From contig OX337241.1 of the NCBI GenBank assembly GCA_946965045.2, forward strand, positions 2,728,001 to 2,792,000: DNA of 64,000 nucleotides, in the 5' to 3' direction. Shown here piece after piece: positions 27,725-49,389 of this stretch. Every line of letters begins with the position of its first letter. Position 1 is the first letter of the stretch. The position numbers were made by a program, and so were the translations under genes. The notes beneath the pieces were generated by a model. That model was not told where the DNA came from and did no database searches. It saw only the letters and a program-made list of their open reading frames with translations. Origin of the DNA: Epithemia pelagica (Eukaryota > Protista > Bacillariophyta).

Positions 27725-30336
27725 GTTCACGGTTCCAAACGTTGACTGCAGAATTTATGAGGATCGAGACACTGTATTGTTAGAGGTTCTTGGGTTTGCT
27801 GCTGCTCTGATGGGTGTGGACTGGAATCACGACTGACTTGACGAAATGTGGATGGATCGAAACACGAGCGATGGGTACTCGTAGCTTTCGTCGCGAGGCA
27901 AATCGTGACCGAAATACACCTCACGCGAGACAGGCAACAAATGGCAGGATTGGTGCGATTCGTTTCCGTCAATTGAAATTGTACTTGCTTCTTCTTGTGC
28001 TGCATCTCTTGGCCTGTATCGGAGCGAACGAATGCCTTGCTGTTGGAATGGTATTCGATACTTGAGTTGGTGGTGTTGGGTTTCTTCAGAGCAGGAGCAT
28101 TAACACACGATGTCAGTGGTAATTCGTTGTCCGTAGTATGATTCGTCCTGTGTTCTCATGTCTGTTATTTTGACCAGGACCTCTGTCTCTGCTTCTTCTT
28201 CTCTTCATCGTCTCTTCTTCGTCGTCGTCTCATCTCCTTCTTGTCATTCCTGTCGGGTCTATCGAAGATACACCCAGCACAACGTCGAAACAGGCAAAAT
28301 ATTTTCCCGATGCATGCAAAGGGTGCGCGATTGCAAGGTGGTTCGGTGTCTGTTACTAGAAGCAACGGCAGGTCGAGACAGACGAAAATGTAGTGATGGA
28401 ATCCATGATGCGGCCTTGCAATCTGCATGCTTTGGTTGGAAACTTGAGACTCGAGAGATACGGATGAGCACACCAAAACATTCATCGTCCATTGTCGATT
28501 GTCGTCGACGACGGTCTGGCCCGACGTCGTCTGCCCGTTGAACAATCACCAGAACGTCTTGTCCACATCAGGCTCTGCTGCTTTCTGTCTCGTCTTGTTT
28601 CACATTTACAACGATCACTCGATACGAAAAGCCCCGACTTCCATGCTTGTTCTTTTGCCCCGTGTCATGGCCATGGTGAACTTTTTCATGCGTCCGCCAC
28701 GTACGGAGGACGGACGGTCGATCAAAACGTTGATGAAAGGCGAGCGCTGGGGGGGGGCAAACAATAAGCGACGAAACACCCTTTTTTGCGTTCACCCCCA
28801 AATCCCAATATCAGTTTGTATCTTTTGCATCACTCTTTGTGTGATTATACATCCTCACAGCTCGACGCATCATCTGTCAATGGTGGAGAAGAAGGTGGTA
28901 TGGTTTTGCGTTGGAGGAACCAGAGTGGCGTGAAAAAGCCACCTGCAATCGTGGAGTAGAAATGTGTCCATCTGCAGCATGACAGCACTCTCCTTTTGTG
29001 GGGAGAGGCAAGACAAAGAAGCTGCAACGACTGTGTGGGTCCAACCGTCCACCATTGTGGCCACTGGGCCGTTTGGACCGCTGGAAAGAACCGCCGACAA
29101 CTTTTTTTTCACCACCAAACGATGCCACGCTCTCGATTCTAATGACTTTCGACAACAAGGAACTGCGGTGATGGTATGGCGATTGTTGCTCCACAGTAAG
29201 GGTTCGTGCTCTTGACTTGGTCACGGTGGCCATCGTTTCATGGATGCATCAGACTTGTGCCATGCTTGGTGGACACCCATACGAATGAGTGAACAAGTCA
29301 CCTAGTTTGTCGGCCCCTATCACGTTCCAGACAAATCCTCTCGATTTGTACTTGCCGTCGCAGCCGCCATATGCTTGATCAGGACCCGTTGGCCACCACT
29401 GTCACTGGTCCCAAAATTCACCATGAATGGCACCACCACACCAGTACCAAGTCGTCATTCCTGTCGGATCTGTCGGATTCGGGGAGCATCCCCTGCCACA
29501 TGGATTTTCCGTTGTACGGTCCACCTTTTGGATTGATGACTGACTGAAACGATGCATGGGTTGTGCGGTAATATGAATCTTCCATTGACCATTTCGTATG
29601 ATGCATGTATATCATGACTGTCGTACTGACAAGGAGAGATCAGGAGGTTCCACAACGACGAGAGAGCTACAGCAACAACAGGCTTGGCGGTGGGTCGAGC
29701 GACTTGTGTAGCACCACTACCACGATCCATCGCAACAAAACACGCCGCGTCAAGAGCGAGGTAGTTTGGCGGAGGATATCACGACGACTCTTTCACCTTA
29801 GGTCGCCCTTTTGAAGGCGGCGGTGTCACCTTCCCACACGAAAAGAGACAATCATACCATGCGTTGCACTGCGGCCATCGTGTATAGGACACACGATGAC
29901 GACCAGCTCATGTCTGGGCAACCACACCGAATAGCCCTCGTCTGCGACGACCGGACAAAGCTCTTGTATTCTTGAATGCACTACAAGATAATCACAATCA
30001 GTCTTTCTTGACACTTGTTCTCTTCGCTCAGTAACATTCGGCGTGAGCTCTCATAGCTTGCCAAAAGCCATGATCTACTGATGATTGAGGAACCTAGATC
30101 ATGGCAGTTCCTCTATACAACCACGGACATGCTTCAAAAGTTGTCCCAACCTTTGACAGATTGTGTTGCTGAAGTTGATTTCCAATTTGAGATTAGATTA
30201 ACTACTAGGATATTCACGATCTCAATAGCTTAGCGATTCCATATCCTTTGTTCGAGAGTTTACTTTCCATGCTATTAGTGTTTCCACGGTCTTGGACATG
30301 CAACCTGTTGTCCGATTTCAAGTGCCATCCTTTTCT

Positions 30337-31527
30337 TTATGACAATGGAATGCGTGAATTGGTCCTCACACGTTTACCGGTTGATACCGAGGTGGAGCAG
30401 GATGTAACATTGATTTCCCGGATACCCATATCTTCCAGAGAATGGAACCATTCGTTGGGATTCTGCTTACAGAGTTGACGAAAGCACCACGTATTCTTGT
30501 CCATCAGTGGTACTGTCGCGCAGGTAGGATTGCCACTTCCACCAATCACGGCAATTTGATTGGCAACACTCACCATAGTACAGACATTGCGGTGATGACG
30601 GAATGGTGGGAGATTCCACATGCGGTTGTGATGTGTGTCCAAGATTTCCACAGTTCCATTGTTTTCCGCCACCACCAGACAGAATCCCACGGTAACCACT
30701 GCACAACAATGCCGTGGGTCGGAAAGTACCAGATCAGAGTGAGTCGTCCAGCCAGACAAGGAGAAAATGAATGTAGACAGAGTACCGTTTCTCTCCTCAT
30801 TGTAGCAGGGCTTTGCAAAGTCGAAAATTTCCACCGAGTCAAGATCGCCGCCCTCGTTAAAGCCTCCAACGACAAAGATGCGGTGACCAATGACCGCACT
30901 GGCACACCATAGTCGTGGAACAGTCATATTTGGTCCCTCTATGACCGTGTGGTTGCTGGTATTAACAATATCCACCGACGGCAAAAAACGACCGTTGTGT
31001 CCACCCATGACAACAATATATCGATTGTGAACCGCAACAGCACAAACTCCTTCTCGAACCGTTGATAAGCAACATGTCAATGTCGTCCAGTGACTCCCAT
31101 GTGTGGTACTGTTTGTCAACGAAGATTGCACGACATCATTGGCATCAATTCGTTCCACACAATCCAACAACGAATAGTAGTTATTGCGTCCTCCCATAGC
31201 GTAGATGCCTCCATTACACACAACAGCAGCATGTCTATAACGTTTCTGGTTCATAGGCGGTCCTTCTCGCCATTGCTTGTTTGATTGTGCTAAGTTCAAT
31301 AACAAAACGGAGTTGACAAAGCCTTTGTGTTGTTGTCTTCCTCCCAACACCACGACCGTCTGTCCATTGTTGTTATTGTCCTGATCGGGATGATCCAGTA
31401 CGACTGACGCATGATCGTGACGCCATCCACCCTCGAGAGGAGGCCAGTCGTTTTCATTCCATTCTGCTCTGTCGTCCGATAGAACAAGGCCCGACTGCCA
31501 TGCTTGGTCTTTCAGTGTCAAATTCAT
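30337..31527 (-). CDS. Kelch-repeat-only protein, paralogue 2
   Basis: 396-aa ORF collinear with paralogue 1; kelch GG..W motifs. Confidence 0.9.
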   Translation of the reverse strand: MNLTLKDQAWQSGLVLSDDRAEWNENDWPPLEGGWRHDHASVVLDHPDQDNNNNGQTVVVLGGRQQHKGFVNSVLLLNLAQSNKQWREGPPMNQKRYRHAAVVCNGGIYAMGGRNNYYSLLDCVERIDANDVVQSSLTNSTTHGSHWTTLTCCLSTVREGVCAVAVHNRYIVVMGGHNGRFLPSVDIVNTSNHTVIEGPNMTVPRLWCASAVIGHRIFVVGGFNEGGDLDSVEIFDFAKPCYNEERNGTLSTFIFSLSGWTTHSDLVLSDPRHCCAVVTVGFCLVVAENNGTVEILDTHHNRMWNLPPFRHHRNVCTMVSVANQIAVIGGSGNPTCATVPLMDKNTWCFRQLCKQNPNEWFHSLEDMGIREINVTSCSTSVSTGKRVRTNSRIPLS

Positions 31528-33173
31528 GGTTCCAAACGGTGACTGCAGACCATGGTCGGTGAACTCGAGTTACAATATATCTATATATATGCGGGCAGGA
31601 ACGTCCACCACGTACAGAGGACGGACGGTCGATCGTTGGCGGTGAGGGGGGGGCGCACACCCCTGTTTTGAGTTAACCCCCAAATCCCAATATCTTTGTT
31701 CGGGTGGGTATATCTTTTCACAAGAGAAAAGCTCACGGTCGGTGCAATGAACAGCTCGACCGATCATCTGTCCATGGTGGAGAAGAAGGTTTGGTTTTAC
31801 GTTGGAGGAACCAGATGTCGAAACCCATGGTTTGTGGCGGACAGGAGCAAACCATGTAGTCACTCGATTGCACTACGATTATGACGACTACACCCAACAG
31901 CAACAACAACCACAAACTGGCCCAGCTTCTACCCATAAAAACAACAACAACAACAATCGTCACATGCACAACAGGCATTCTGTTTTGTCCTCCTTCTTGC
32001 TATTTCCGATATCAGTGAATGAATGGTTTCGATCGACGCATCAATAACTTGTAGTCCAAATGACAACAACCACAACCATCAGTCGGTTATGGTTATTTGG
32101 AACAAGGGCCACCACCAGCACAGCCTTGGGAATCGTAACATCACCATATATTAATAACCGCGTCGACAGGTTTGGGGCTCCGCAAAGACATTGGCACCAA
32201 GAAAGAGGAACCAACAACGACCCTTCATAACGACAAAACACGAGTCAAAAACGACAATGGCACCACTACAACGACATCTACAATGCTCATTTGGTATGAT
32301 GCATCAGCATCGGACCTTTGGATCCCCTTGTTTCGTCATTTTTGTCGGAGTCATCGAACATGACCATGAACCACACGACAAAACAAGGCACGGACAGATA
32401 CAGAGACTCATGGTGCGTGGTGGAAGCGAGCAAAGTTCAAGTATCCAAGGAGCAAAGACCACGCAGTCCTTCGATTGCCCTACAATGATGACAACAACAC
32501 CCAAAAACTCTTTCATCAAGGAGAGCACGGCAAGAGCTGAAAACTCAGGATTCTTTATCCACCAACAGCACCAATACAACAATCGTCGTAAACACAACAG
32601 GCATCCCGTTTTGTCCTCCTTCTCGCAATTTCCAGAAATTGGAAGGAATGAATGCTTTCGATGGAGACACAATTCAGGCCGTTCCTTCCACGTCCAAAAG
32701 ATGCAGCGAGACCATCAAAGACCGTCGTCATTAATCGAAAGATGAGTCATTCTATTCCAGACCAGAGAGTATTCAACACCAAAGAGAGGAGCGGGACCAT
32801 GGTCATCCACCCAAGAGTGATTGCCAGAAATCCGCTAGGTAGTTTGCAGAGGACAGCAGACGCTGTAACATCTCATTACGGATAGCTTACCATGGCCAGA
32901 GGGGTGCGACTGCCGCAGACGCCATCGCATCAGAAAGAAATTCATGTGCGGTCATATGCTATAAGGCGGTGCTTCGAACATGCTAGGAGTTTCTCTCTAA
33001 TCCCTGAACCTAAAACTATACGATTAATAATGTAATTAAGAACTGCCACGATGTCCTGTTTTGTATGAGAGTATAATGACCATGATACAGTTTCCGGGCT
33101 CTTGGACGTGTAACGTGTTGGACATTTCAACTGCCATGCTTCCCTTTGTCGCAATCACAATCATCTAAGGTCC

Positions 33174-34343
33174 TCAATCGTTTAAGAGTCGACGACGAGA
33201 TGGTGCAGGATCTCCGTTGCCCGATCTTTCATGACAATGATACCATTCAATCCAAGGCTGCTGGCAGAGTTGACGAAAACACCATGTATTCTTGTCCATT
33301 AGTGGTAATGTCGCAGAGGACGGATTGCCCATTCCACCAATCACTGCCATTTGATCCGCCAGAGTCACTGCACTGCAGCCATCGCGCCTTTTCTTTCCCA
33401 ATAGCGGGAGATTCCACACGCAGTTGCGGTTCGTATCCAAGACATCCACAGTTTGATTGGCTACCCCTCCCGCCACCACCAGACAGGATCCCACAGTCAC
33501 CACGGCACAAGAACTTCGTGCTCTGGAAAGCACCACCTCAGAATGAGTGATCCACGTGGACGAGAAAGAAATGAATGTTGAACCACTCTCCTCCTTTGTA
33601 TCCTCATTGTCACAAGGTGTTGCATAGTCCAAATACTCCACCGAGTCAAGAAAGGCGCCCTCGTTATAGCCTCCAACGACAAAGATGCGGTGGCCAGCGA
33701 CTGCACTGGCACAAAATGATCGGGGAACATTCATGGATGGCCCGGCAGTGACAGTATGATTGCTGGTGTCAATAATCTCAACCGAGGACAACCAGTGTGA
33801 GTTCCATCCCCCCAGTACAACAATGTATTGATTGTTTACCGCCACAGCACAACAACCACATCGTCGCGTTGATAACCGGCATGTCAATGTCGTCCAATGA
33901 CTCTCATGTGTGCTCCTTGTTGTGGAAAGTGATTTCAGCAAATTGTTGGCATCCATTCGTTCCATACAATCTAACACTGGATTTTCACGATTCCATCCTC
34001 CCATCACGTAGATGCCTCCGTTGCACACAACAGCGGCATGTTCCTCACGGCTCTTGTTCATGGTCGGCCCTTCTCGCCACTGCTTGTTTGATTCAGATAA
34101 GTTCAATACTAGAACGGAACTGGTGGGCCCTTGGCCTTGCTGATTTCCGCCCATCACGACAACCGTTTGTCCCTTGTGGTTGCGATTGTCGTCCTTATTA
34201 TCGCGATGATCGAGTACGACTGACGCATGAAAGTCTCGCGCTCCACCCTCGAGAGGAGGCCAATCGTTTTCGTCCCATTCTACTCTCTCGTCCGATAAAA
34301 CAAGGCCCGACTGCCATGCTTGTTGTTTCAGAGTCATGGTCAT
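33174..34343 (-). CDS. Kelch-repeat-only protein, paralogue 3
   Basis: ATG 34343 (MTMTLKQQAW); kelch motifs as in the other paralogues. Confidence 0.9.
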   Translation of the reverse strand: MTMTLKQQAWQSGLVLSDERVEWDENDWPPLEGGARDFHASVVLDHRDNKDDNRNHKGQTVVVMGGNQQGQGPTSSVLVLNLSESNKQWREGPTMNKSREEHAAVVCNGGIYVMGGWNRENPVLDCMERMDANNLLKSLSTTRSTHESHWTTLTCRLSTRRCGCCAVAVNNQYIVVLGGWNSHWLSSVEIIDTSNHTVTAGPSMNVPRSFCASAVAGHRIFVVGGYNEGAFLDSVEYLDYATPCDNEDTKEESGSTFISFSSTWITHSEVVLSRARSSCAVVTVGSCLVVAGGVANQTVDVLDTNRNCVWNLPLLGKKRRDGCSAVTLADQMAVIGGMGNPSSATLPLMDKNTWCFRQLCQQPWIEWYHCHERSGNGDPAPSRRRLLND

Positions 34344-35190
34344 GGTTCCAAACGGTGACTGTAGATTAATGAGGATCAAGACACACTGTACTGTGAGAGG
34401 TTCTTAGGTTGGCTGCTGCTCTGATGGGTGCGGACTGGAAGCACGACTGACTTGCCGAAATGGATGGATCTTATCACGAGCGATGGGTAGCTTTCGTCAC
34501 GAGACAAACTGTGACAGTAATAGTCACACCAAAGGAAGAACCCCACGCGGAAGGTGTTGGATGATATCGAAATAATCTGCTCGCGGCGAGACAAACAACT
34601 AATCCTTTCAAAATTCGCAGATCAAGAAAGTATTGGTGCGATTCGTTTGCATCATTTTGTGGTTGTGGTAAAGCTCCACAGTCTGTCTGGTTGTTGGTTC
34701 CCAACGAATAAGCAACAACACTGCAGAGGCCGTGGATGGAGAGACATGGGTAGTTTTGCACGTCGGGGAAGGAATTTGCTTGAATGAGACGGTGATTCAA
34801 CCGGTTGTTGTTGGCGCTGCTCTTGTTGTTTCATCCTGCAAGTACTGCTGGTCGTGAGTTCAATATCGTAGTGTTGTACAAGGTGATTCGACCTGTTGTT
34901 GTTCCATCCTGTGATTAGTACTGCTGGCGGTCGGTGCAATGCCTCAGCATTCCAGATGACTATGGCTGTCTATCATTGTCGTAATACGACTTGTCCGGTC
35001 ATTGTTGTTTGCCAGTCCCTCCCAGCGAGTTTCAATTTGTAGAACCCCAGCGGCGCAATACAAAGGACTAGGGCCCTGCTGCTACCGGGTCACGACATGG
35101 CTTGCTAATACGATGCATGCAAACGGTAACAGGACGACGGTTTGTTTGTCTCTCGTTGCTGCTGTTGCTGTTGTTGTTGTGTGGTGTTCG

Positions 35191-35276
35191 TGTTGTGCTT
35201 AGTATCGGAATGATTGAGTACGACCGTAGTCGTCATGCTAGGGTCGTACTTAATCATCCCGATAATAAGGACGACA
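35191..35276. other. Kelch-derived hairpin A (40-nt arms, 6-nt loop), candidate small-RNA precursor
   Basis: Arms 35191-35230 and 35237-35276 pair with 33 WC, 3 G:U and 4 mismatches on the + transcript. The right arm matches kelch-3 sense sequence (34182-34229). Confidence 0.6.
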
Positions 35277-35909
35277 ATCATTGCGCTACATTTCAGTAAA
35301 GCGGTAAAAGGACCGTAGCCATCGTAGCTATTATACTCCAATGAACACAAAACTCACAAGAACGCGTGGAAGCTGTTTGACCTTTTGTGGTGTCTGTCAT
35401 GCGTCCACAGAAAGGAGATCGCACATAAACTACATGACAGAAAGCAGATCTTTTTTGTGTCCATCCAAAGCTTTCTCGCTCTATAAAATCAATGGTTCTC
35501 CCCTCTATGTATGCATGGAGATGGTAGATTCATGTCCCTCTTTACAAAGACAACGTTGTGCCGGAGGTATCCTTCTTCCTGACACAACAACACAACAGTA
35601 ACAACAAGTCCAAAAGGTCACAGCCGCTCGGTACGTTGAAAAACAAGAGTTGAATCGTTCTCTGTCTCGTTCTACTATTAGTTTTACAAGGAAACCTACA
35701 TTGGATACTCATCTCTCGTCTCTTTCACAGGATTGTCCTTCTCTTGTTTAACAAAAACAGACTGCAGTATGATTCGTTGGGAACGGAACATGGTCAGATC
35801 CGATCCAGTCCTGGTATTGGTTGCTACACAGGGTGATGTTGTCTGATGCTGCACACAGGGATAGTAGCGTTGTCGTGGTGGTGGTGGTTGATGGTATACC
35901 GAATGCACA

Positions 35910-38900
35910 CTAGGTCGAAACGACCCAGACACCACCCAATCCGTGCGAGAGGAGAGCGAGACTTTCGGGCGATTCCACGACAAACAAGAAACAGACACGC
36001 GAATTGCGCCATTCCGACTGCGCCGAACAAAACCATTCGGCCACAACTGCTTCCGTCGACCACTGCTCCAATACGACCAACCATTCATGGGGCGTCGGTG
36101 GCAAGGCTTCCAAGACGGCCAAGACATGATCGGAGGCATTCGTAGTCTTGTGGTTGTTGGTGGTGCTGCTGCAGAGTTCCGTACGCGGCACAAAGGTGGT
36201 TGTGGTGGACGTCCAACACTCTTGGACGACCGTGTTGTAATCGTGCAACAAGGTTTCGGCGGAACTGGCATTGAGGGGCAAGACATCGCGATGGGGAGCG
36301 GCTTGTTTCCAGGCATGGGCAATGGAGCGAGCAATGCTGCGACACGAAGTAGTCGTGGTGGACGTGTCCTGACTTGTTGTCAATGCCACGGGAAAGCCCA
36401 CAAAGTCCAACTTTTCCAAGACGGAATTCAACACGGTCGGTTCCACGGCAATGACACCATTGGTTTCATCCAATTGAGGAATGCCGGGAGGAGGAAAGAC
36501 GACGGCCTTCTTTTGTGTAAGTTGCCGTGATGGTTCGGGAACAGGTACTGTCATGGTTGTGGTGGCAACAAGACTTGGTTCCTTGTTGTTGTTGTTGTCC
36601 TTGTCGTCGTTCTTGTCCAGTGGCACGATCGGGTCCGATTGATGGGTGGGTTCCTCTGGGACTTGGTTTGGGGGCACAGCACTGTCCTTGTTGCTAACGT
36701 CATTCTCAGACGAAATGTCCTTTGGTGACGACGTTGCCGGGGTCGGTGTCGTGGGCTGTTCCACTTGCAAGGTATCGTAGCCCAGAGGGTCTTGCAAAAA
36801 GTGTTGCGGCGTCTGACCCTGGCCATCGGCTTCCGTCAAGAGAGCGGGAAACTTGGTGGTCAAGAATTGAACGCATCCCGTCGCATGGGCTTGACAGGCC
36901 AAATGAATCGGCAAGATACCCTGCGCATTGCATTGCTGCGCCAATTCGGGAGCCAATTCGACCAACAATCGTACCACCTCCAAGGACGAGGCGACATCCT
37001 CCTCCTCGGCCGTCTCCTCCTCCATGACGGGTGCTTGAACTGCCGACCGTGTCGATTTGTCATCGTCGTCGTCATCTTCCTTGGGCCATTCCGGTTTGAC
37101 GTCACACTCCAAGTGCAACAAGGTATTGCGATTGACATGCGTCAGCAGGTAGAGGAAGGCATTGCGATTGGTGCGTGAAGATGACTCCTCCACAATGGAC
37201 AAAGTGTTGTTGGTGGTCGTCATGCCAGAATTGGACGCCGCCTCGGTCTTGTCAATCAAGAATTCCACAACATCAAGCGACGCGCGATGAGCACAGGCCG
37301 AATGCAAGGGCAACCACCCTTGATGATTGGCAATCACTTGGGGAGGTGGTGTACAATCGGCCAAGGCGACAAAGAGTTGGACCGCTTGGAGGGATGGTTT
37401 GTGACTGCACAAGACATGAAGGGGACGATTGCCAATGGCATCGACCGGCTCTTGCAAGATCCATGGTACGCTTTGCAGGGTTTCTTGGGTGCGACGCAAA
37501 TTTAGGGCTTGCGCATCACGGCAGGTGCGATGAAATTGATGCAACTCTTCTTCCTTGTCTTCCCAGGACTCGGATGCCGATAGCAATTTGTCTTGTGTGG
37601 GTTTCTGGGACGAGGTTCCCGGCTGTCCAGGAGTACCACCACCACCCGATGCTGGTGTGGTGGCAGTGCTGGCCCCGGTTCCTCGTGGTGTCGTCGTCAT
37701 GGAAGCGGAATTGGAATGATTGGCCATGGACAAGTTGTAATTTTGCTTGTGTCGAGAGGATCCGAGCACCAAGGTTCGCGGCATGTGCGATCGTGGTGTC
37801 GGTCCCTTTCCTGCTCCTCCGGCAGGAGTCCCACGTCGGCTGCTGCTGCCACGAAAGAGACGTTTGAGCAAGCTCTTTTTGCGTCCTCCTTCCGATGCTC
37901 CTCCTCGTGTTTCGGTATGATAGGACGATACCTCGTCCTCGACGGGTGCGGCGGGGGAAAACAACCGACGACCACTACTACTCTTTTCCCGTCCTACACT
38001 GCGTCCTCGACTGTAACTGGCTTCGCGCTGTCGACGACTCGTGGTACTTGTTGTGTTGGCCGTTTGGATACTGCGCGTGCTGCTTTTGCGACTGCGCGTA
38101 CTTCGAGTACTGCGCGTACTTTTGGTGCTTCGGGAACTCCGATTGCTCTTGTTGATGCCCACGGACCAATCGTCGTCGCCACCACCCGTCAAGAAGCCAC
38201 TCAAGGACCGATTGCTGAAGCGACGCAAAAATTGTCGACCTCCACCAGTCGGAGCAGCATCCTCCGAGGAATCCAGAACGACGGGGGCCGAAATGCCAAA
38301 GGATTCGCAAATGTCCAAGCCACTGCCCCCGGAAACGAGGAGCATGGAAAGTTGGGGAATGGTCACGAGGGAACAGCCACATTGGACATGAGCCAGATCC
38401 GGCAAGCTCCAGACGACGTTGCGTTGGGGATCACCACTTGGACGGACGACAAGTGCGAATGGCCATTGTCTTCTCCACCGGCCACCACCAAACAGTGTCC
38501 CAAGACGGTCAGTCCGTGTCCACACCGTGCCACTGGCAAGGACAAGTCCGGTCGTTCCTTCCAGGCAAAGGAGGCAAAGAGCGCGCGAAAGGGATCCTTG
38601 TTTCGTTTGGGAGGCGGTGTGGCATGAAATTCCAAACTGGCCACGGAATTGGTGCACGTGTTATCCTCCCGGCGGCCCCCGACAATCCAAATTTCGTTCC
38701 CCACCACAGCGGCGCCAAACCGACGACGATCAATCGACATGGGGGGACCCGGTACAACGGCTGCCAAATTGCTCGTGCCACCGGACGACAATTCTTGGTC
38801 TCGGGCCAGGTGGGTATCGACAATGTCGACCGAACAATCATTTTGCGCTCCACCGCCCATGACAATAATATAGCGGTTGTGAACCGAGACGGCGGCACAT

Positions 38901-39982
38901 CCGGACCGGGGCATGGACAAGCGGCAGAACAAGCGGGTCCACACGGGTGTCGCTGCGGACGACGACAAGGACGGATCGTGGGCTGTCGTTGTGCCGGTAC
39001 TCTTGTGAGAGGCGACGGATTGATCGTCGCTCATCATGGCAGAAGAATTCAGTACCATGGCATCCGTCATGGCACCACCCGTCACCAAGGCGGTATAATC
39101 GACCGTGAGGTATTCCAGCGTATCCAAACTGGCCGTCCCATTCATGCCTCCAATGGCATAGAGGGCAGCGGCAGCAGCACCACCACCACACCGAACCGTG
39201 GCAAAGTTGGTACGGGCCTGCGTCATGCTCGGACCGGCTCGCACAAATTGACGCTTGGCCGGATCCAAGACCACGGTCGAAGCCGTGGCGGCGCCTTCTT
39301 GGTATCCACCGAGCAAGAGGACCAAAGTGTCGGGAAAGTTGGTATAGGGACGTTGTTTGGTATTGGTCGTGCCGGCTGGCACGGGTGGAGATGTGTCGTA
39401 CTCGTCGTCTGGTTCCATGTCGTACAGGTAATCGGATCGATGCAAGACGAGGGAGGAATGGTACCAGCGCCATCCCCCCAAAATGGGCGGCCAGGCATCA
39501 ATGTTCCATTCGGCCGCCGCCGCCGCATCCCGTCCTCCTCGTGACGAAGAGTTTCGGGGGGATGGTACGGTCATGCCCGACAAGGCGGCATGTTCCCGCC
39601 ACGACAAGGAACTCGGCGGAATGGGGGCAGTGACCATGCCTTCGCCCATGCCACCGGTATCTCCGTAGCCGTAGGGATTGCAATCGTCTTGCAGTGCTGG
39701 TTCTTTGTCTGGTCGTTGTTGTGGTGGTGGTTGGTGGGCCACCACTCCTGGATTGGGTTGCACTTCTCCTGGATACAATTGCAACGAATTGGGTCGTTGC
39801 AATTCGCCGGGCACCACGTGCCGAATTTCTTGTTTTTCCTCTGGTTCGTGGGTGAGATGGCCCGAGGGATGATGATCACTCCAATTGTCCTCTCCCTGTT
39901 CCAATTCCTCACTCATGTCAAACGTCAAGGCACTGTCGTGCATGGGGTGGTGATTCGGATGCGGATCTTGAACCGACAACAT
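35910..39982 (-). CDS. Kelch - disordered linker - ankyrin repeats - degenerate NB-ARC-like protein (~1357 aa), one -1 frameshift at ~38433
   Basis: The kelch ORF 38363-39982 continues as (V)DPQRNVVWSLPDL...CSLV in ORF 35910-38657. Ankyrin motifs GNRPLHVLC, GWLPLHSAC and GILPIHLAC at ~36800-37450. The C-terminus has LNASSAETLLHDY...EWLVVLEQW...GGVWVVST. Confidence 0.7.
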
Positions 39983-40790
39983 GATGATAATGATGGAACA
40001 CTGTCACGAAAGTCAAAGCGTTTCGTGGTTGGACTGTTGGTTCGACCGCACCGAAACTGAGAACCGAAACGCCAAACTTTGTATCTCTAGAAAAGAGCTC
40101 CTGAATTTTGTGGGAGTGTGTGTTCGACGACGAACCGACCACACACACACACACCTCTTCTCTGTGAGTTTGACAGGGACACATCCGGACAAGACACACG
40201 GAGTTGACAAACAAGGTCGTCGCTGGATTGGGAATCCGCAGTTCGACGACGAGGACGAGAGGAGTGTCTTGGGGGCGGAGGGTTCTTTCGGCACTCGTTG
40301 TTCCAGTTCTCGAGCAAGGTTCGAGTCGAACTCCCCCACCAATCGTTCGACAGGAGCGGTTCCGGATGGACCTGCCCAAAAGATTCGTTTCGTCATTTTG
40401 TGAGAATCTTTCTCAGCGTTGAAACTTGAAACACAGTTTTGTGGCCGGATTGTTCGGGAATACACAATGCTGGGTCGGTTTGTATTGCCTGGGGGTTCTC
40501 CATCTCATTGAGTTTTGCCTCTTGTCTATAGCCCGTTCGATGGGCAATGATTCAAGCTTGCGCAAGTCGCGACGGGCAGACGGAAAAGGAACCCTCTACG
40601 AGCGACCCCAAGGCGTCTCATCTGCTGGCGAATTTGAAAACTACCCCTCCCAAGGATCAAAACTAGGATAGCTAGAGGAGTACCGACCAACGATGGTTAC
40701 GGTCCTTTTACCGGTTTACTGAAACCAGGACCATAACACAAGCAGGGGAGTCGGGCCTTGTCGTCCTTTTGTGCGAGACACCGCAATGAT

Positions 40791-40890
40791 TGTCGTCCTT
40801 CTAGTATCGGGATGATTGAGTACGACTGTATCATGGCGAGAGAGGCATGCTACAATCGTACTCAATCATTTCGATACTAGAAGGACGACA
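40791..40890. other. Kelch-derived hairpin B (45-nt arms, 10-nt loop), candidate small-RNA precursor
   Basis: Arms 40791-40835 and 40846-40890 pair with 41 WC, 2 G:U and 2 mismatches on the + transcript. The sequence matches the kelch ASVVLDH.D..DDN coding segment. Confidence 0.65.
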
Positions 40891-41726
40891 CTCACAACAA
40901 CAACAGCAACAGGCAACAGCAGCAACAAGAGACAAACCGTCGTCGAGTTACCATGTACATGCACCGTATGAGCAAGCCATGTCGCAACACGGCAGCAACA
41001 GCAGGGCCCTAGTCCTTTGGATTGCTGGGGTTCTATTATTTGAAACTCGCTGGGAGGCACACCACGACGCTAATAGGACGACCCATGACGAGAATTGTAG
41101 GATGACGAGGAATCGGAGGAAATGGAATGCCCGGACCAGTAGTACTACGACAATGGCAGACAGCACAGTCATTCAGAACACTGAGGCATTGTGATCACAT
41201 TGCACCGAGGACCAGCAGTACTATAATCACAGGATGGAACAACAACAGGTCGAATCACAATCCCTCCACAGTGTTGCTTATTCGTTGCGAACCAACAACC
41301 AGACAGACTGTGAAGCCTTTTCAATGCATGGTTGGAACACGACACTATACAGTACTCTACTGCCCATTGCAAGTGGCATGCGCACCCACCACAAACTGAC
41401 TGGAACGAATCGCACCAATCCTGCCATTTCTGTTCTGAGACTCGTGCAAGGATACCAGTGGTTGTCTCTCTCGCCGTAAGAATTTTATTTCGATATCCAG
41501 TCACTTCCACGGTCTTTGGAATTCATAGGATGCGTGGTCTTCTTCAGTGCGTGACTATATACGGTCACGAGTTGTCTCGTGACGAACCTCTTTTCTAGAT
41601 CCATCCATTTCGTCAAGTCAGTCCGTACCCATCAGAGCATTACCGCAGCAAGCAGCAGCAAACCCAAAACCCTCTCACAATACAGCTTCTCGATCCTCAT
41701 CAGCTCTGCAGTCAACGCTTGGAACC

Positions 41727-42884
41727 ATGACCATGACACTGAAAGATCAAGCATGGGAGTCGGGGCTTATTTTATCGGACCAGACACCTGAATGGAATGA
41801 AAACGATTGGCCCCCTCTTGTAGGTGGATGGCGTTCGCATCATGCATCGGTTGTACTCGATCATACGGTCGTCGTGTTGGGTGGATACAAACATTTGCAA
41901 CATAATGTCAATTCCGTTCTTGTATTGAATTTAGCTAAACCAGACAAGCAGTGGCGACAAGGGCCATCCATGAACAAGAAACGTTCTGGACATGCCGCTG
42001 TTGTGTGCAACGGAGGTATATACGTGATGGGAGGATTCAATGGATATTCAAAGTTGGATTGTATGGAGCAAATTGATGCCAACGATTTGCTACAACCATT
42101 GTCGACATCAAGCATCACGCATGAGAGTCATTGGACGAAATTGAAATGCCGATTATCAACGGGACGGAATGGATGTTGTGCCGTTACGGTGAAGAATCGA
42201 TACATTGTTGTACTGGGGGGATGGGATGGAGGGCACAGGTTGTCGTCGGTGGATATCATTGATACCAGCAATCACACTGTCATTGCGGGACCAAATATGA
42301 ACGTTCCACGTAAATGGTGTGCCAGTGCGGTCGTTGGCCACCGCATCTTTGTCGTTGGAGGCTCGACAGTAGAGTATTTGGACTTTGCAAGGCCTAGTGA
42401 CAATGCGGAGAGAAACGACACTCTGTCTACATTCATTTCCTCCTTGTCTGGTTGGACGACTCACTCTGATCTGGTACTTTCGGCCTCGCGAGATTCTTGT
42501 GCAGTGGTTACCGTGGGATCCTGTCTGGTGGTGGCGGGAGACGATCAAACTGTGGAAATCTTGGATACGCATCACAGCCGAATGTGGAATCTTCCACCAT
42601 TCAAGAATGGTCGTGCAGACTGCTCTATGGTGACTGTAGCCGATCAAGTTGCGGTCATTGGTGGATGGCATAATCCATCCTGTGCGACATTACGACTCAT
42701 GGACAACAATACGTGGTGCTTTCGTCAACTCTGTGACCAGCCTCGGATTGAATGGTATCATGGTCTGGAACGATCGGGCAACGATGATGTCAATGATACA
42801 TTCTCCACCATCTCGTCGTCGACTTTTAAACGATTGAGGACCTTTGATTATTGTGATTGTGACAAAGGGAAGGATGACAGTTGA
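41727..42884 (+). CDS. Kelch-repeat-only protein, paralogue 4
   Basis: 385-aa ORF starting MTMTLKDQAWESGL; inverted counterpart of paralogue 3. Confidence 0.9.
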   Translation: MTMTLKDQAWESGLILSDQTPEWNENDWPPLVGGWRSHHASVVLDHTVVVLGGYKHLQHNVNSVLVLNLAKPDKQWRQGPSMNKKRSGHAAVVCNGGIYVMGGFNGYSKLDCMEQIDANDLLQPLSTSSITHESHWTKLKCRLSTGRNGCCAVTVKNRYIVVLGGWDGGHRLSSVDIIDTSNHTVIAGPNMNVPRKWCASAVVGHRIFVVGGSTVEYLDFARPSDNAERNDTLSTFISSLSGWTTHSDLVLSASRDSCAVVTVGSCLVVAGDDQTVEILDTHHSRMWNLPPFKNGRADCSMVTVADQVAVIGGWHNPSCATLRLMDNNTWCFRQLCDQPRIEWYHGLERSGNDDVNDTFSTISSSTFKRLRTFDYCDCDKGKDDS

Positions 42885-44412
42885 AATGTGCAACAGCTTA
42901 CACGGCCAAGAGCCCGGAAACTAGATCATGGGCCATTATACTCTCATACAAAAGAGGAGATCGTGGCAGTTCTTAATTACATTATGACTCATATATTTTT
43001 AGGTTAAGTAATTCGACAGCAAGTCCTTACATGTTTGAAGCACCACCTTATAGCATATGACCGCACATGAATTTCTTTCCGATGCGATGGCGTCTGTGAC
43101 AGTCGAACCCATCCGCCATGGTCAGCTATCCTTGTAGCAAATAATGAGATTTTACAGCGTCTGCTGTCATTTCTGGCAATCACACTTGGGTGGATGGCCA
43201 TGGTACCGCTCCTCTCTTTGGTGTTGAACACTCTCTGGTCTTGAATAGAATGAATCATCTTTCGACGGTTTTTGATGGTCTCGTTGCATCTTTGGGACGT
43301 GGAAGGAACGGCCTGAATTGTGTCTCGATCGAAAGCATTCATTCGTTCCAATTTCTGGAAATTGCCAGAAAGAGAACCAAACGGGATGCCTCTTCAAACG
43401 GGATGCCTCTTGTGCATGCGAGGATTTTGTTGTTTTGGTGCTGCTGGTGGATAGAGAATCCTGATTTTACAGCTCTTGCCGTGCTCTCCTTCATGATAGA
43501 GTTTTTGGGTGTTGTTGTCATTATTGTAGCGCAATCGAAGGACTGTGTGGTCTTTACTCCTTGGCTCCATGAACTTTGCTCGCTTCCACCGCGCACCATG
43601 AGAGTCTCCATATCTGTCCGTGCCTTGGTTTGGCGTGTGGCTCCTATGTTCGATGAATCGCGGACAAAATGACGAAACGGGCGGATCCAAAGGTCCGATG
43701 CTGATGCATCATACCAAATGGGCATTGTAGATGTCGTTGTAGTGGTGCCATTGTCGCTTTTGACTCGTGTTTTGTTCTTATGAAGGGTCATCGTTGGTTC
43801 CTCTTTCTTGGTGTCAATGTCTTTGCGGAGCCCCAAATCTGTCGACGCGGTAAATATAAGGCGATGCTACAATTCCCAAGGCCGTGCTGGTGGTGGCCCT
43901 TGTTCCAAATAACCGACTGGTTGTGGTTGTTGTCATTTGGTCTACAAGTTATTGATGCGTCGATCGAAACCATTCATTTGCTAATATTGAAAATAGCAAG
44001 AAGGAGGACAAAAAGGATGCCTGTTGTGCATGTGACGTTTGTTGTTGTTGTCGTTGCTGGTGGGTGTAGTCGTCATCATCGTAGTGCAATCGAGTGACTA
44101 CACGGTTTGCACCTGTCCGCCACAAACCATGGGTTTTGACATTTGTTGGTGTTCCTTATTTTGGCTTGGTTCATGGTCGTGTCCGATGAATCCGACAAAA
44201 GAACGTCTCCACACTTCTCCTCCCCTTGCAATCAACATTGCCATTGAACGATCATGTGTGGGGAAACCGAAGTGCATGGTTGGTGTGTAGAGGACGGATC
44301 ATCACCACTGCACTTTTGTGTTGATGATTGAGTAAGGTACTTGCGGAGGATTCTGGTTATCATGATGGCTTTTCGCGGTCCGTGCAAGGGTGCTTCTTCT
44401 TGGAAATCCTGG

Positions 44413-44727: not shown

Positions 44728-47700
44728 ATGGCTACGGTAGACGACTTATCATTAAAGCATCTACGTTTGCAGACGTTCGATGGAAAGCATGAAAATTTCC
44801 AAGTTTGGTTCATGAACTTTCGTTCATATGCAGTGGCGCATGGATTCAAGTCGGCGATCAGCAAAGATGGGCCTGACACTGACTTGCCTTTGCGGGATGA
44901 TTCACCTCTCGATACCGATGCAACAGTGGCGGGAAAACAAGCTTTGGCCAAGAAGAAGAATGCGGCAGCCTTTTGTGCCTTGAACCTTGCGATGACAAGC
45001 CCTCAGATGATCCGAATGTTGACCGAAGCTCAGACGGATGAATGGCCCGATGGTTTGGCCTGGAAGGTGATTGCTGCATTGCACAAGAGATTTAAGCCGA
45101 CAGACACTGTATCGAAGATCGAGATGCGAAGGTTGTTGGGTAAAGTGGCCATGACCAAGAAAGAAGATCCGACTACTCTGTTCAGCCAAATTGGGCAGAT
45201 TGAAAATATGTTCAACGTGACGGTTGATGATGAGGAGAAAATTGCGATCGCAATTGAGGCAGCTCCGCGAGAATACCAGTCGATTATTGTGTCCGAGCAA
45301 CGCCAGCGGGGTGCGACATTGACGTCGGACCACATTGAAGACGTTATGCGGTTGCACTGGCGTGCACTTTATGGTCAGCGCACCAAGAATTTCCTGCAAG
45401 ACGACGGAGACGAAGACAACGAAATTGGTCTCGCAGCTGGAGACAAACAAGGTTCAACGTCAGGAAAGTCAAAATCAAGCAAGAAAAGTGGGAAAGGAGA
45501 CGGCAAGAAGACTTACAAATTCAAGGGCAAGTGCCATCATTGCGGAAAGGTCGGGCACAAGGCAGCAGACTGCTGGATAAAACCCGAAAACAAAGATAAG
45601 AGGCCCGAATGGTACAAGGTCGAGGAGCATGGCAAAGTAGCAAAGGACAGTGGTGAGACGGATGTCGAAGGCAGCGTCGAAATCATCACTTGTGCGGTCG
45701 ACTTACCTCCACGGAACATGGTATGGTTAGATACCGATGACGAGGACGATCACAACGAATACGAAGAACTCCCTGACTCGGTACTCGATCACGAGATCGT
45801 GAGCGACACCGACGACGAAGAGACAAGAGGCGACGACGAAGACCTCGATTGGATCAGTTTGTTGGGTGAAGAGGACGATGAAAGCATCCACGACTCGTTG
45901 ATTGTTGTATCAGATGACGACGAAGAAGAAGTGGACAGGGAGATTTGTTGTGCTGGTATGGCGAAGGAAATGGAATTCCCAGCCATCCAAAGTCTCCTGA
46001 CAGATCCGAATGTATGGATCGCAGACACAGGAGCGACGACGCATATGACTCCGTTTCGCGTCGGAATGGTTAATGTGAAGAAACAACATGATGAGAAAGG
46101 GATCACCATGGGCAACAATAAAACAGAAAAGGTCGTGGAAGTTGGCAACTTACCTGGAGTGTTGCACGACAAGAATGGGAACGCGCTCAACCGTGTGAAG
46201 ATGCAAGATGTCAGCGTGGTTCCAAGCGGTGGATTCAACCTGTTCAGCATCACGAAAATGCAGATGAGTGGATGGAAATTGGAAGGAGACAAACAGTCAA
46301 TCCGACTTACCAAGAATGGGCAGGAGATCATCTTCGATATCAAGATCCAAACGCCCAAGGGAGTGATTTTCGCCGCGTATTTTGAAAGGACCGAGTTGGG
46401 AAACGCAGCGACAAGTGAAGAGCAAATCAAAATGACAATGGAACAGGCTCATGAGAAACTGGGTCACATCGGAGAGAAAGCAGTAATCGAAACAGCCAAG
46501 AAACTTGGATGGAAACTTACCAAGACAACGATGCCAAAATGTGCAGCTTGCGCAGCTGGAAAGGCAAAACAGAAGAACTTGCCGCGAAATGAGAATGGAG
46601 AAGATGACAGGGAACACGATGACGAGAAACAACTTCGTGCTTACCTCGACATGGCCTCGATCAAGAAGAAGCAAGACATGCCAATTCCGTCGAAGCCGCA
46701 GTGGAGGATCTTGGTGGTCCACCCAAAAGTCCAGCTCAAGCTTTCCGAGTTCTATGATGCGAAAGATGAGATGCCAGAGGACACATGTGAGAAAATGGCA
46801 TTGATGAAACAACATGGTGTGTCCATCACTCACCTTCGGTTGGACAATGCAGGCGAGAACAAGGCCTTGCAGAAACGGTGTCAAAATGAAAAGTGGCAAC
46901 TTGGAATCCATTTCGAGTTCACTGCCCGTGATACACCCCAGCAGAACTCTATCGCTGAGGTGGGATTTGCTACCGTGATGAATCGAGCACGTGCGATGAT
47001 GCACCGCGCTAATATTCACATCGAAATCCGCTTCAAGTTGTGGCACGAGGCTTGCATGACGGCAACGCTTTTGGACGGCTTGGTTGTTGTGGATCATGGG
47101 GGAAGATCTGCGACTCGATACGAACACATTTGGGGGAAAGTGCCAACGTTCGCGAAACACTTGCGAATTTGGGGGGAAGCCGGAACGGTCAAGATCAAGA
47201 CTAAAACTTCCCCGAAATTAATGGACAAAGGTGTACATTGTTTCTTCGTTGGGTATGCACGTAATCATCCGGGTGACTGTTATCGGATGTTTGATCCCAA
47301 AACGGGTCGTGTTCGGGAATCACGCGACGTGACTTGGCTAAAGCGGCTATACTACAAGAAACCTCCTAATGCCAAGGAACTACAAACCAATCCAGTCGTG
47401 GATGCTGAGGCTGCATCGAATCACGGGGAGAGTCGCGGAAGTGGTCGCGAAAACGATGGCCAAGACGACCATGGCGGAAACGACAGCAATGTGAACGACA
47501 ACAACTCCAACAATGAATATGAACCGGATGATCCGATGCCTGAGGTCAACATGAGCACAGGCAATGACGAATCCACGGCTCCAGTGCGGAATATTGTGAT
47601 TCCGGAGCCTGATGAAACAACGACGACGCGAACAGGTCGTACCATACGAGCACCACAACGGTTGATTGCTGAAATTGGACAAGCCGTGTTGTCCAAGGCC

Positions 47701-49389
47701 GAACAGAATTACTACCATGCCCTTCAGGCATTGGACTCTGATGCCGACAGCTTCCTGGATGAAGAATTGGCCATGGTGGGTGCCGGATTGGGGCAAGGCA
47801 TCACGAATACAAAAGAGCTCAAGGTGATGACCTTTGATGAAGCAATGGCCCAAGCCGACAAGGATGCATGGGTGAAGTCAGTCGATGAAGAACACCAACG
47901 CATGATTGATTGTGGCGTTTGGGTGCCCATTCGGAAAGAAGATTTGCCTCCCAATTGCGACATCATCGATTCGACTTGGTCTATGAAGAAAAAGGCCAGT
48001 GGGAAGTATCGTGCTCGTTTGGCAGCTCGGGGTTTCAAACAACGCGAAGGAGTGTCATACGATCGTGATGATTTATTCGCACCGGTGGTCAACGAACTCA
48101 CCGTGAAAATTGCCTTTGTGATGATGATTTTGGCTGGGTGGTACGCCCATTTAATGGACGTAAAAGGGGCTTTTCTAAAATGTGGTTTTCGCACGCAACA
48201 CAAAGTGGCAATGGAAGTCCCAAGAGGTTTTGAAAAATTCTATCCCTACGGTTGGTTGTTGCTTCTGTTGAAGACGCTCTACGGATGCAAGCAAGCCGCT
48301 AAGATGTTTTGGGAATTTCTGTTGAAGTTGATGCAGAGTATGGGCTTTGATCGAAGCAAAGCCGACCCTTGTTTGTATTTTGCTTGGACGCAATTTGGGC
48401 TTATCTTGTTTCTGTCCTACATTGACGATATGATTCTGATGGGGAATAAAGACGGAGTTATGCATTTCCGTGAAATCTTCAAGGGAAAGGTTGATGTTGA
48501 TGATATTGGACCGTTGGATGAATATTTGGGGGCCAAGATTGAATTTTGTACTGAACAACGCACAGTCAAAATTACCCAACCAGTTCTTCTTCGCAGCTTT
48601 GGGGACGAATTTGGAGTGGGGGAGGGTACATCGAAAACACCTGCTGTACCGCACAGCACACTACAACCTGGTGATGAGAGTTCGCGTTTGGATGCTAAGG
48701 GCACATTTCGGGTTCGGTCTGGGATTGGAAAACTGTTGTACTTAATGAAATGGAGTCGCCCTGACATTTCAAATGCCGTTCGAGATTTGAGTCGGTTCAT
48801 GCAGGAACCTTCTCTTGCGCATGACAAGGCAATGCGCCGCTTGATGGAATACTGCGTCTCAACCAAACAGCGCGGTCTTTTGCTAAAACCAGAGGGACAG
48901 TGGGATGGAACAGCCGATTACGAGTTTGAGATCAGCGGCCGTTCTGACAGTGACTACGCGAAACAGCACGATCGCAAGAGTGTTAGCGGAATTTCGGTGT
49001 TTCTCAACGGTGCACCTATCCAAACGAAAAGCAAGACTCAGAGCATCATAACCCTGAGCGTTACGGAAGCCAAATTGGTGGCTGCTGTGGACTGTGTGCA
49101 AACGATGTTGTTCGCTCGGCAAATTATTCTCAGTATGGGGCTTAAGGTGAAACTACCTATGCTACTTGAAATGGACAACAAAGGGGGGAAAGATATCATC
49201 AATTCGTGGGCAGTTGGTGGACGGACACGTCACATAGATGTCCGAATGTTCTTCCTTCGAGAACTCAAGGAAGAAGGAATTCTCAAATGCAACTGGATCA
49301 GCACTGACGACAATTCTGCGGACCTCTTTACCAAGAATCTTGATGGTCCCACCTTTCTTCGTCATGGGTTGGTCTTTGTGGCCGATTGA
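44728..49389 (+). CDS. Copia gag-pol polyprotein (gag zinc knuckle, protease, integrase, RT, RNase H)
   Basis: CHHCGKVGHKAADC; WIADTGAT; HEKLGH..CAAC; YLDM..LDNAGE..NSIAE; YRARLAARGF, LYGCKQA, YIDD; SDSDYA..DN..ADLFTK. The domain order PR-IN-RT-RH is that of copia. Confidence 0.98.
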   Translation: MATVDDLSLKHLRLQTFDGKHENFQVWFMNFRSYAVAHGFKSAISKDGPDTDLPLRDDSPLDTDATVAGKQALAKKKNAAAFCALNLAMTSPQMIRMLTEAQTDEWPDGLAWKVIAALHKRFKPTDTVSKIEMRRLLGKVAMTKKEDPTTLFSQIGQIENMFNVTVDDEEKIAIAIEAAPREYQSIIVSEQRQRGATLTSDHIEDVMRLHWRALYGQRTKNFLQDDGDEDNEIGLAAGDKQGSTSGKSKSSKKSGKGDGKKTYKFKGKCHHCGKVGHKAADCWIKPENKDKRPEWYKVEEHGKVAKDSGETDVEGSVEIITCAVDLPPRNMVWLDTDDEDDHNEYEELPDSVLDHEIVSDTDDEETRGDDEDLDWISLLGEEDDESIHDSLIVVSDDDEEEVDREICCAGMAKEMEFPAIQSLLTDPNVWIADTGATTHMTPFRVGMVNVKKQHDEKGITMGNNKTEKVVEVGNLPGVLHDKNGNALNRVKMQDVSVVPSGGFNLFSITKMQMSGWKLEGDKQSIRLTKNGQEIIFDIKIQTPKGVIFAAYFERTELGNAATSEEQIKMTMEQAHEKLGHIGEKAVIETAKKLGWKLTKTTMPKCAACAAGKAKQKNLPRNENGEDDREHDDEKQLRAYLDMASIKKKQDMPIPSKPQWRILVVHPKVQLKLSEFYDAKDEMPEDTCEKMALMKQHGVSITHLRLDNAGENKALQKRCQNEKWQLGIHFEFTARDTPQQNSIAEVGFATVMNRARAMMHRANIHIEIRFKLWHEACMTATLLDGLVVVDHGGRSATRYEHIWGKVPTFAKHLRIWGEAGTVKIKTKTSPKLMDKGVHCFFVGYARNHPGDCYRMFDPKTGRVRESRDVTWLKRLYYKKPPNAKELQTNPVVDAEAASNHGESRGSGRENDGQDDHGGNDSNVNDNNSNNEYEPDDPMPEVNMSTGNDESTAPVRNIVIPEPDETTTTRTGRTIRAPQRLIAEIGQAVLSKAEQNYYHALQALDSDADSFLDEELAMVGAGLGQGITNTKELKVMTFDEAMAQADKDAWVKSVDEEHQRMIDCGVWVPIRKEDLPPNCDIIDSTWSMKKKASGKYRARLAARGFKQREGVSYDRDDLFAPVVNELTVKIAFVMMILAGWYAHLMDVKGAFLKCGFRTQHKVAMEVPRGFEKFYPYGWLLLLLKTLYGCKQAAKMFWEFLLKLMQSMGFDRSKADPCLYFAWTQFGLILFLSYIDDMILMGNKDGVMHFREIFKGKVDVDDIGPLDEYLGAKIEFCTEQRTVKITQPVLLRSFGDEFGVGEGTSKTPAVPHSTLQPGDESSRLDAKGTFRVRSGIGKLLYLMKWSRPDISNAVRDLSRFMQEPSLAHDKAMRRLMEYCVSTKQRGLLLKPEGQWDGTADYEFEISGRSDSDYAKQHDRKSVSGISVFLNGAPIQTKSKTQSIITLSVTEAKLVAAVDCVQTMLFARQIILSMGLKVKLPMLLEMDNKGGKDIINSWAVGGRTRHIDVRMFFLRELKEEGILKCNWISTDDNSADLFTKNLDGPTFLRHGLVFVAD

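Follow-up and report, generated by a model that had tools for sequence, protein, structure and literature searches.

Why should a row of kelch genes in a diatom genome contain two near-perfect hairpins built from kelch coding sequence, and must the hairpins do anything for the genes that they resemble? The locus lies in a 64,000-nt window of the Epithemia pelagica genome (assembly GCA_946965045.2, contig OX337241.1, positions 2,728,001 to 2,792,000 of the forward strand), and window positions below count from the first letter of that whole stretch. We refer to the two elements as hairpin A (35191-35276) and hairpin B (40787-40894). The original prediction, made from the letters of the window, saw in them a silencing switch for the kelch family encoded at the locus itself. 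Our analysis points to a different history: on balance we think it probable that the hairpins are template-switch palindromes that arose in a kelch pseudogene relic, were duplicated together with a gene unit and have been drifting neutrally since. No function is required to explain them.

Hairpins A and B and the relics that carry them

The original prediction had described stems of 40-45 bp, and hairpins of this kind are indeed present. Hairpin A consists of two 39-nt arms (35191-35229 and 35238-35276) that are 85% complementary around an 8-nt centre, and hairpin B of two 49-nt arms (40787-40835 on the left and 40846-40894 on the right) that are 90% complementary around a 10-nt loop (40836-40845); both were delimited by folding and a repeat finder, and A is also intact in independent contigs of sequencing reads. 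Folds are near-perfect on either strand, with B taken as 40791-40890: the minimum free energy (MFE) of the RNA is -51.7 kcal/mol on the + strand and -40.9 kcal/mol on the - strand for A, and -71.8 and -67.3 kcal/mol, respectively, for B. The + strand z scores are -10.5 for A and -15.6 for B, those over both hairpins and both strands range from -9.4 to -16.4, and no shuffled version of A or B folded equally well (0/200). With 36 pairs in A and 44 in B, the MFE structures are single stem-loops with few mismatches, the shape looked for in the precursor of a microRNA (miRNA). Such structures are rare in this DNA. We detected no long local palindromes besides A and B in the 64-kb window, and in 242 kb, comprising the window and 35 other loci, the next-best local palindrome spans only 46 nt. 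Elsewhere in the window, at 62040-62097, there is an overlapping palindrome in which GACGTC/CACGTG motifs are abundant, with 32-nt arms of 72% complementarity.

The hairpins are not assembly artefacts, because in independent contigs that we compared, from three public runs that look like genomic DNA (their depth is even; their kind is not on record), hairpin A is spanned without change and both arms of B are represented, the only break, at 40819/40821, falling within its left arm. Between the three runs and the assembly there are about 20 fixed differences, none of which falls within either hairpin. The arms have also diverged from each other, which the arms of an artefact would not show, and on both grounds this explanation was ruled out. 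In the 5' part of the relic that carries B, at 40714-40756, the read contigs and the assembly disagree through indels and substitutions at five closely spaced positions, with the hairpin itself unchanged; these differences may represent a conversion patch or a strain difference.

Both hairpins sit within partial copies of the start of a kelch gene. The relic carrying B (40724-40950, + strand) follows nt ~1-170 of the kelch coding sequence collinearly, with gaps and ~65% identity, as seen in alignments to the paralogues L048 and L036 and to the neighbouring gene kelch 3. It begins near the start codon and proceeds through the codons for LLDETPEW, DWPP, RE, HASVVLDH and QTVVV, and it contains matches to nt 21-45 and 147-169 of the coding sequence of many paralogues. 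The relic carrying A (35125-35300, - strand) is a mirror copy of it, in which 10 nt of the loop and ~45 nt of the 5' part are missing. The orientation of the relic is that of the intact kelch gene downstream. Judged by its alignment, the relic is a decayed, dead 5' fragment of a kelch gene.

Only one arm of each hairpin belongs to this collinear sequence. The right arm of B, along with everything 3' of it, is part of the relic and represents the original coding-sense arm; the left arm (40787-40835) repeats the right-arm segment in inverted orientation, as an additional copy, and is antisense to kelch. Read on the - strand, along which its relic runs, hairpin A is built in the same way, with 35276-35238 as the inverted antisense copy and 35229-35191 as the original sense arm. 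The coding homologue of the arms is found in the codons of kelch 3 at 34184-34229 (HASVVLDHRDNKDDN). A 26/27-nt match that had been claimed between the right arm of A and kelch 3 lies inside a longer match of 34/37 between 35243-35279 and 34220-34184, and a claimed resemblance to kelch 2 holds as well, the left arms forming one repeat family with 31380-31413 in kelch 2 and 34196-34229 in kelch 3. The proposed origin in kelch coding sequence, with which the arms are collinear, can be stated more exactly: each hairpin is a palindromised piece of a kelch pseudogene relic.

Single-arm relatives and the case for template switching

We searched the genome (60.5 Mb in 23 contigs) and found three more loci related to A and B, on contigs C4, C1 and C16, making five in all. 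Two of these, C4:1725778-1725860 and C1:5264207-5264289, are relics with a single arm that lie the same distance upstream of a kelch gene as A and B do. In both, the single arm is flanked by a perfect 10-nt inverted repeat, TGTCGTCCTT / AAGGACGACA, which also bounds the arms at A and B. The coding sequence of kelch 3 holds a precursor of this repeat in the form of a quasi-inverted repeat between DWPP and KDDN codons (34150-34260, - strand), 11/14 complementary and ~56 nt apart. The left junction, CAATGATTGTCGTCCTT, has exact matches genome-wide only at A, B, C1 and C4, and these four loci form one clade with support of 97/96 in a tree of the module that lies between the relics and the kelch genes. 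The C1 and C4 segments are 98.3% identical to each other over ~920 aligned nt of relic and upstream module.

Comparison with the single-arm loci separates the two arms of B. The reverse complement of its left arm matches the C4 spacer at 37/40 positions and the C1 spacer at 37/40, whereas the right arm matches the C4/C1 spacers at 29/40 and carries three transitions of its own. There is, then, an inverted fragment of at least 15 nt beside its source that explains a cluster of differences relative to the unmodified homologue, as seen in the 37/40 spacer matches and the one-armed coding paralogues, and the 10-nt repeat at A, B, C1 and C4 provides the short inverted repeats that template switching calls for at its switch points. 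Used as outgroup, the coding paralogues show one arm to be what appears to be the primitive state. Template switching is known to make imperfect inverted repeats longer and more uniform, and to produce complete hairpins of pre-miRNA size from one event (PMC13100816, PMC10710096). The perfect 10-nt inverted repeat around the single arm at C1 and C4 makes replication template switching the most likely origin of the hairpins, that is, fold-back copying primed by a quasi-palindrome that already existed in the coding sequence.

From this mechanism we infer the following order of events. The quasi-inverted repeat of DWPP versus KDDN codons in a kelch coding sequence would have primed a strand switch, and switching would have perfected the short repeat, giving the state seen at the C1 and C4 relics. 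The 35-45 nt between the repeats would then have been copied in inverted form to yield a stem of 45-49 bp, the state of A and B, after which the entire kelch unit would have undergone an inverted segmental duplication that left A and B flanking a gene with ankyrin and kelch repeats, and both copies would have decayed at about the neutral rate. The palindrome predates the segmental duplication, because A and B share their junctions and the centre of A equals that of B minus 10 nt. The kelch family, many copies of which are broken, offers ample raw material for palindromes.

The sequence surrounding the two single-arm relics has a structure of its own. C4:1716000-1735000 and C1:5255000-5274000 are inverted copies of the same kelch segment on two contigs. 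Each contains a truncated kelch joined to the 5' relic at DKNT, together with an intact kelch gene and a fragment that shares 91-96% identity with window positions 36303-36480, which belong to the ankyrin-kelch gene.

The third relative, C16:2903560-2903620, is a half-hairpin that shares 61 identical nt with B, comprising the left flank, the left arm and the loop. Past the centre of the palindrome it continues for only 5 nt, into the right arm, and stops beside a CAG repeat, and no kelch genes were detected around it in 19 kb; it looks like a break or a conversion tract at the palindrome. Compact inverted repeats at more than one place in the genome might also be expected of miniature inverted-repeat transposable elements (MITEs) or other fold-back transposons, or of artefacts of assembly such as those dealt with above, an explanation that we regard as extremely improbable. 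The related loci number only five, two of which are single-armed, the arms are derived from and collinear with host coding sequence, and no target-site duplication of flanking bases is seen at the hairpin ends; on these grounds a transposon was rejected.

A second pair of hairpins, on contig C11, derives from the same kelch 5' coding segment. Patterns for palindromes of the conserved arm core of this segment detected A, B and the two C11 hairpins genome-wide; the recurrence of the segment is partly a matter of ascertainment, because the patterns look only for this coding segment. The C11 hairpins (363940-364023 and 364604-364687; L053:1488-1583 and 2158-2241) are two copies within a ~660-nt tandem unit and have arms of 41-47 nt, a 2-nt loop, RNA MFE values of -60 to -69 kcal/mol and z scores of -9 to -12. 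Their palindrome centre lies ~30 nt further 5' than that of A and B, at GGW codons, and because of this shift and the tandem-unit setting we treat them as the product of a separate palindromisation.

The segmental duplication itself is evident from inverted repeat pairs in the window. Its left arm (31812-35325) comprises the kelch 3 unit, the relic and hairpin A, and its right arm (40690-44145) comprises hairpin B, the relic and the kelch 4 unit. The duplication is ~3.5 kb in size, with the kelch-ankyrin gene between its arms. Within it, the position of A mirrors that of B, A lying 810 bp upstream of kelch 3 and B 840 bp upstream of kelch 4. A rival reading is that the palindromes act as DNA, as cruciform-forming fragile sites that promote breakage, gene conversion, rearrangement and the shuffling of kelch arrays. 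Their DNA folding is strong (-27.9 kcal/mol for A and -44.3 kcal/mol for B), and the inverted duplication has its inner ends within ~50-100 nt of the hairpins. The abrupt end of the C16 copy, fully identical to B amid diverged flanks, and the near-identity of the C11 hairpin between tandem units would also suit such a role. However, the duplication ends elsewhere than at the palindrome centres, few such sites occur in a family of hundreds, and features of this kind are by-products of any palindrome for which a selected role is not needed. We consider a DNA-level role very unlikely.

Pairing and the possibility of small RNAs

A and B had been said to have diverged in sequence yet to fold still, partly through G:U pairs, and this description is accurate: 14/86 aligned positions differ between them, and both fold. 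The hairpins differ at the same rate as the adjacent well-aligned flank, where 30/175 positions are mismatched. We derived a neutral expectation for the retention of pairs from the branch lengths of the upstream module, taking the stem as initially perfect. Hairpin B has kept 41/45 Watson-Crick pairs (0.826 expected, P 0.088), and hairpin A has kept 33/39 (0.733 expected, P 0.073); neither value exceeds the neutral expectation significantly. One compensatory pair distinguishes the two hairpins, being T-A in B and in the single-arm consensus and C-G in A. G:U pairs make the + strand the better folder in A and in B, and because the two are mirror images, these pairs favour opposite strands of the relic, which is unlike the expectation for one functional RNA strand. 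In divergence, pair retention, compensatory change and G:U asymmetry alike, we found no convincing sign of selection on pairing at A and B, and hence no structure under selection of the kind that would mark a miRNA. An exact-pattern scan of metagenome contigs for relatives in other organisms gave no match.

These results bear directly on the proposal of a silencing switch, under which A and B would be hairpin-RNA (hpRNA) or proto-miRNA genes. Transcription would follow the orientation of the relic (+ for B, - for A), the stem of 40-49 bp would be diced, and small RNAs from the inverted arm would pair with the HASVVLDH-coding segment of kelch mRNAs and silence them by lowering their expression or directing methylation. 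If transcribed, the hairpins would form double-stranded RNA of Dicer size, and the length and shape of both stems suit that enzyme. The genome encodes components of RNA interference (RNAi), namely several RNA-dependent RNA polymerase genes, a Piwi-domain gene at C6:1493144-1494130 and, at C4:1022134-1023027, a gene in which two RNase III domains lie side by side, and inverted-repeat constructs silence genes in Phaeodactylum (PMC2724275). Antisense 21-mers with at most 2 mismatches match 19/33 tested kelch genes for A (- strand) and 10/33 for B (+ strand), and one 27-mer of A is 26/27 complementary to the neighbouring kelch 3. Accordingly, the locus has the layout of hpRNA or endogenous small interfering RNA (siRNA) loci, an inverted repeat whose arms are homologous to would-be targets, in that the arms are collinear with the coding sequence and match 10-19/33 paralogues. 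An origin in inverted copies of their targets is also described for plant MIR genes and Drosophila hpRNAs (PMC3237417, PMC10292708). In C11, too, the same coding segment was palindromised independently, with the hairpin as the best conserved part of the tandem unit.

Much of this likeness would arise without silencing. The antisense 21-mers match because the arms derive from the kelch family, so that homology between the arms and the family is an automatic outcome of their origin and not independent evidence. As described above, A and B evolve like their flanks, with a single compensatory pair and a G:U asymmetry that is inconsistent between the copies, and a kelch family with hundreds of members yielded only 2 + 2 hairpins. 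Small-RNA sequencing of three diatoms detected no canonical miRNAs, the small RNAs coming mostly from repeats and tRNAs (PMC4156623, PMC4247016). The hairpins belong to no described miRNA family in Rfam, where they gave sub-threshold matches to generic long hairpins (25.6 bits where the cut-off is 90, and 20.5 bits where it is 180). A silencing role is possible but, in our estimation, doubtful, and we regard the hairpins as a candidate source of small RNAs only. A bolder version of this idea, distinctly unlikely as we see it, is that template switching in dead kelch copies has repeatedly given this diatom new hairpin-RNA genes, always capturing the most conserved 5' segment, and that the resulting small RNAs dose or silence hundreds of kelch genes. 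If true, the hairpins would be a diatom counterpart of the miRNA control of NLR clusters in plants or of Drosophila hpRNAs directed against amplified selfish genes, and would represent miRNA-like regulators in a lineage where none are known.

Several observations weigh against neutral palindromes made by template switching, our preferred reading. How the lineages of A, B and C1/C4 branch varies with the outgroups, so loss of one arm in the C1/C4 lineage is also possible: A and B group together with support of 85/78 under one outgroup set, and B groups with C1/C4 at 76/68 under another (approximately unbiased test, p 0.30). The switch points are ambiguous, with several short inverted repeats in the coding sequence and two possible parses; in one, the loop of B is original coding sequence, sharing a 10-nt exact run with paralogue L048, and in the other, it is the reverse complement of sequence beside the left repeat. 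When A and B are pooled, 74/84 pairs are retained against ~66 expected, a modest excess by a rough normal approximation, though misaligned fast flanks or arm-to-arm conversion would give the same. The 61-nt identity between C16 and B stands against flanks that are only ~87% identical, which fits gene conversion and also constraint. Between the C11 units, finally, the hairpin differs at 1/88 positions and the rest at 54/448 (Fisher p 8e-4), and this near-identity likewise fits either a conversion patch or constraint.

The interest of the locus lies in how families such as kelch, with hundreds of copies that evolve fast, are kept in check. The four defined hairpins, complementary to the conserved 5' segment of the family, are concrete loci at which to test for small RNAs. 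Even if silent, they offer a clear natural example of template switching that turns a coding quasi-palindrome into a hairpin of pre-miRNA size, with the intermediate state kept at paralogous loci and a second independent event in the same gene segment.

Gene neighbourhood and comparison with known systems

The window contains a row of small kelch genes, one of which lies at 26630-27730 (- strand). It is followed by kelch 2 (30337-31527, - strand, 396 aa), in which 31380-31413 is homologous to the hairpin arms, and by kelch 3 (33174-34379, - strand, 401 aa; Pfam Kelch_1, 1.4e-35), while kelch 4 (41727-42884, + strand, 385 aa; Pfam Kelch_1, 5.6e-33) is found downstream of hairpin B. The 650 nt adjoining each kelch start form an upstream module that is common to many paralogues, as detected by blastn against 30 paralogue loci. 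It occupies 41076-41726 (+ strand) between relic B and kelch 4 and, by alignment, 34380-35015 (- strand) between relic A and kelch 3. Open frames beside the hairpins (40847-41194, 39918-40465, 35696-36334 and 34474-34800) matched no Pfam family. Genome-wide, a first look gave 939 candidate members of the kelch family, and the 107 that were scored all had E values below 1e-141. Stand-alone kelch genes form long arrays on contigs C6, C8, C9, C11, C13, C17 and C20, with stop codons in many of the copies.

Between A and B, and outside both hairpins, lies the central gene with kelch and ankyrin repeats (35910-39982, - strand), recognised by Pfam and by its composition, with a G+C content of 55-58% against ~48% around it. 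Two long open frames overlap in it, one with kelch motifs (38363-39982) and one with ankyrin repeats (35910-38657), and they probably belong to a single gene that has an intron or a frameshift. Just past the right arm of the inverted duplication, we detected an intact-looking Copia-type polyprotein of 1553 aa (44728-49389, + strand) with RVT_2, SH3_retrovirus and Pol_BBD domains above the Pfam cut-offs and a weak gag-pre-integrase match below the cut-off.

Known small-RNA systems resemble the locus in part. As in the inverted-duplication model for plant MIRNA genes, including those that target NLR genes (PMC3237417), the arms of the foldback share homology with the coding sequence of a family that is large and evolves fast, and the locus lies inside the cluster of that family. 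Unlike in plants, the inverted copy is only ~45 nt long and local, not the duplicate of a larger gene fragment, and diatoms are without detectable canonical miRNAs (PMC4156623, PMC4247016). The hpRNA loci that act against young amplified families in Drosophila (PMC10292708, PMC10317233) are comparable in having the would-be target family as their source, in being recurrent and lineage-specific, and in the presence of an RNAi pathway. They differ in that they are usually hundreds of bp long, with abundant siRNAs and proven targets, whereas the stems here are 39-49 bp; in contrast to both the plant and the fly loci, ours are known from DNA alone. The repeat-associated small RNAs of diatoms (PMC4247016) similarly arise from DNA that is repeated and possibly methylated, in a diatom that has RNAi genes, though they are 25-30 nt long and come mainly from transposable elements, unlike the short gene-derived hairpins described here.

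Hairpins attributed to template switching in primate miRNAs (PMC10710096) and yeast promoters (PMC13100816) provide a further comparison. The substrate in E. pelagica is unlike theirs in being a pseudogene relic of a diatom multigene family, and the direction of change is not firmly rooted; the primate cases, moreover, were chosen as annotated miRNAs, and ours are recognised by their DNA sequence. As in those systems, an inverted, adjacent copy of 35-50 nt has been inserted beside its source, pre-existing short inverted repeats bound the copy, and one event yields a near-perfect stem of pre-miRNA size, with a paralogous state that has no long arms at hand for comparison.

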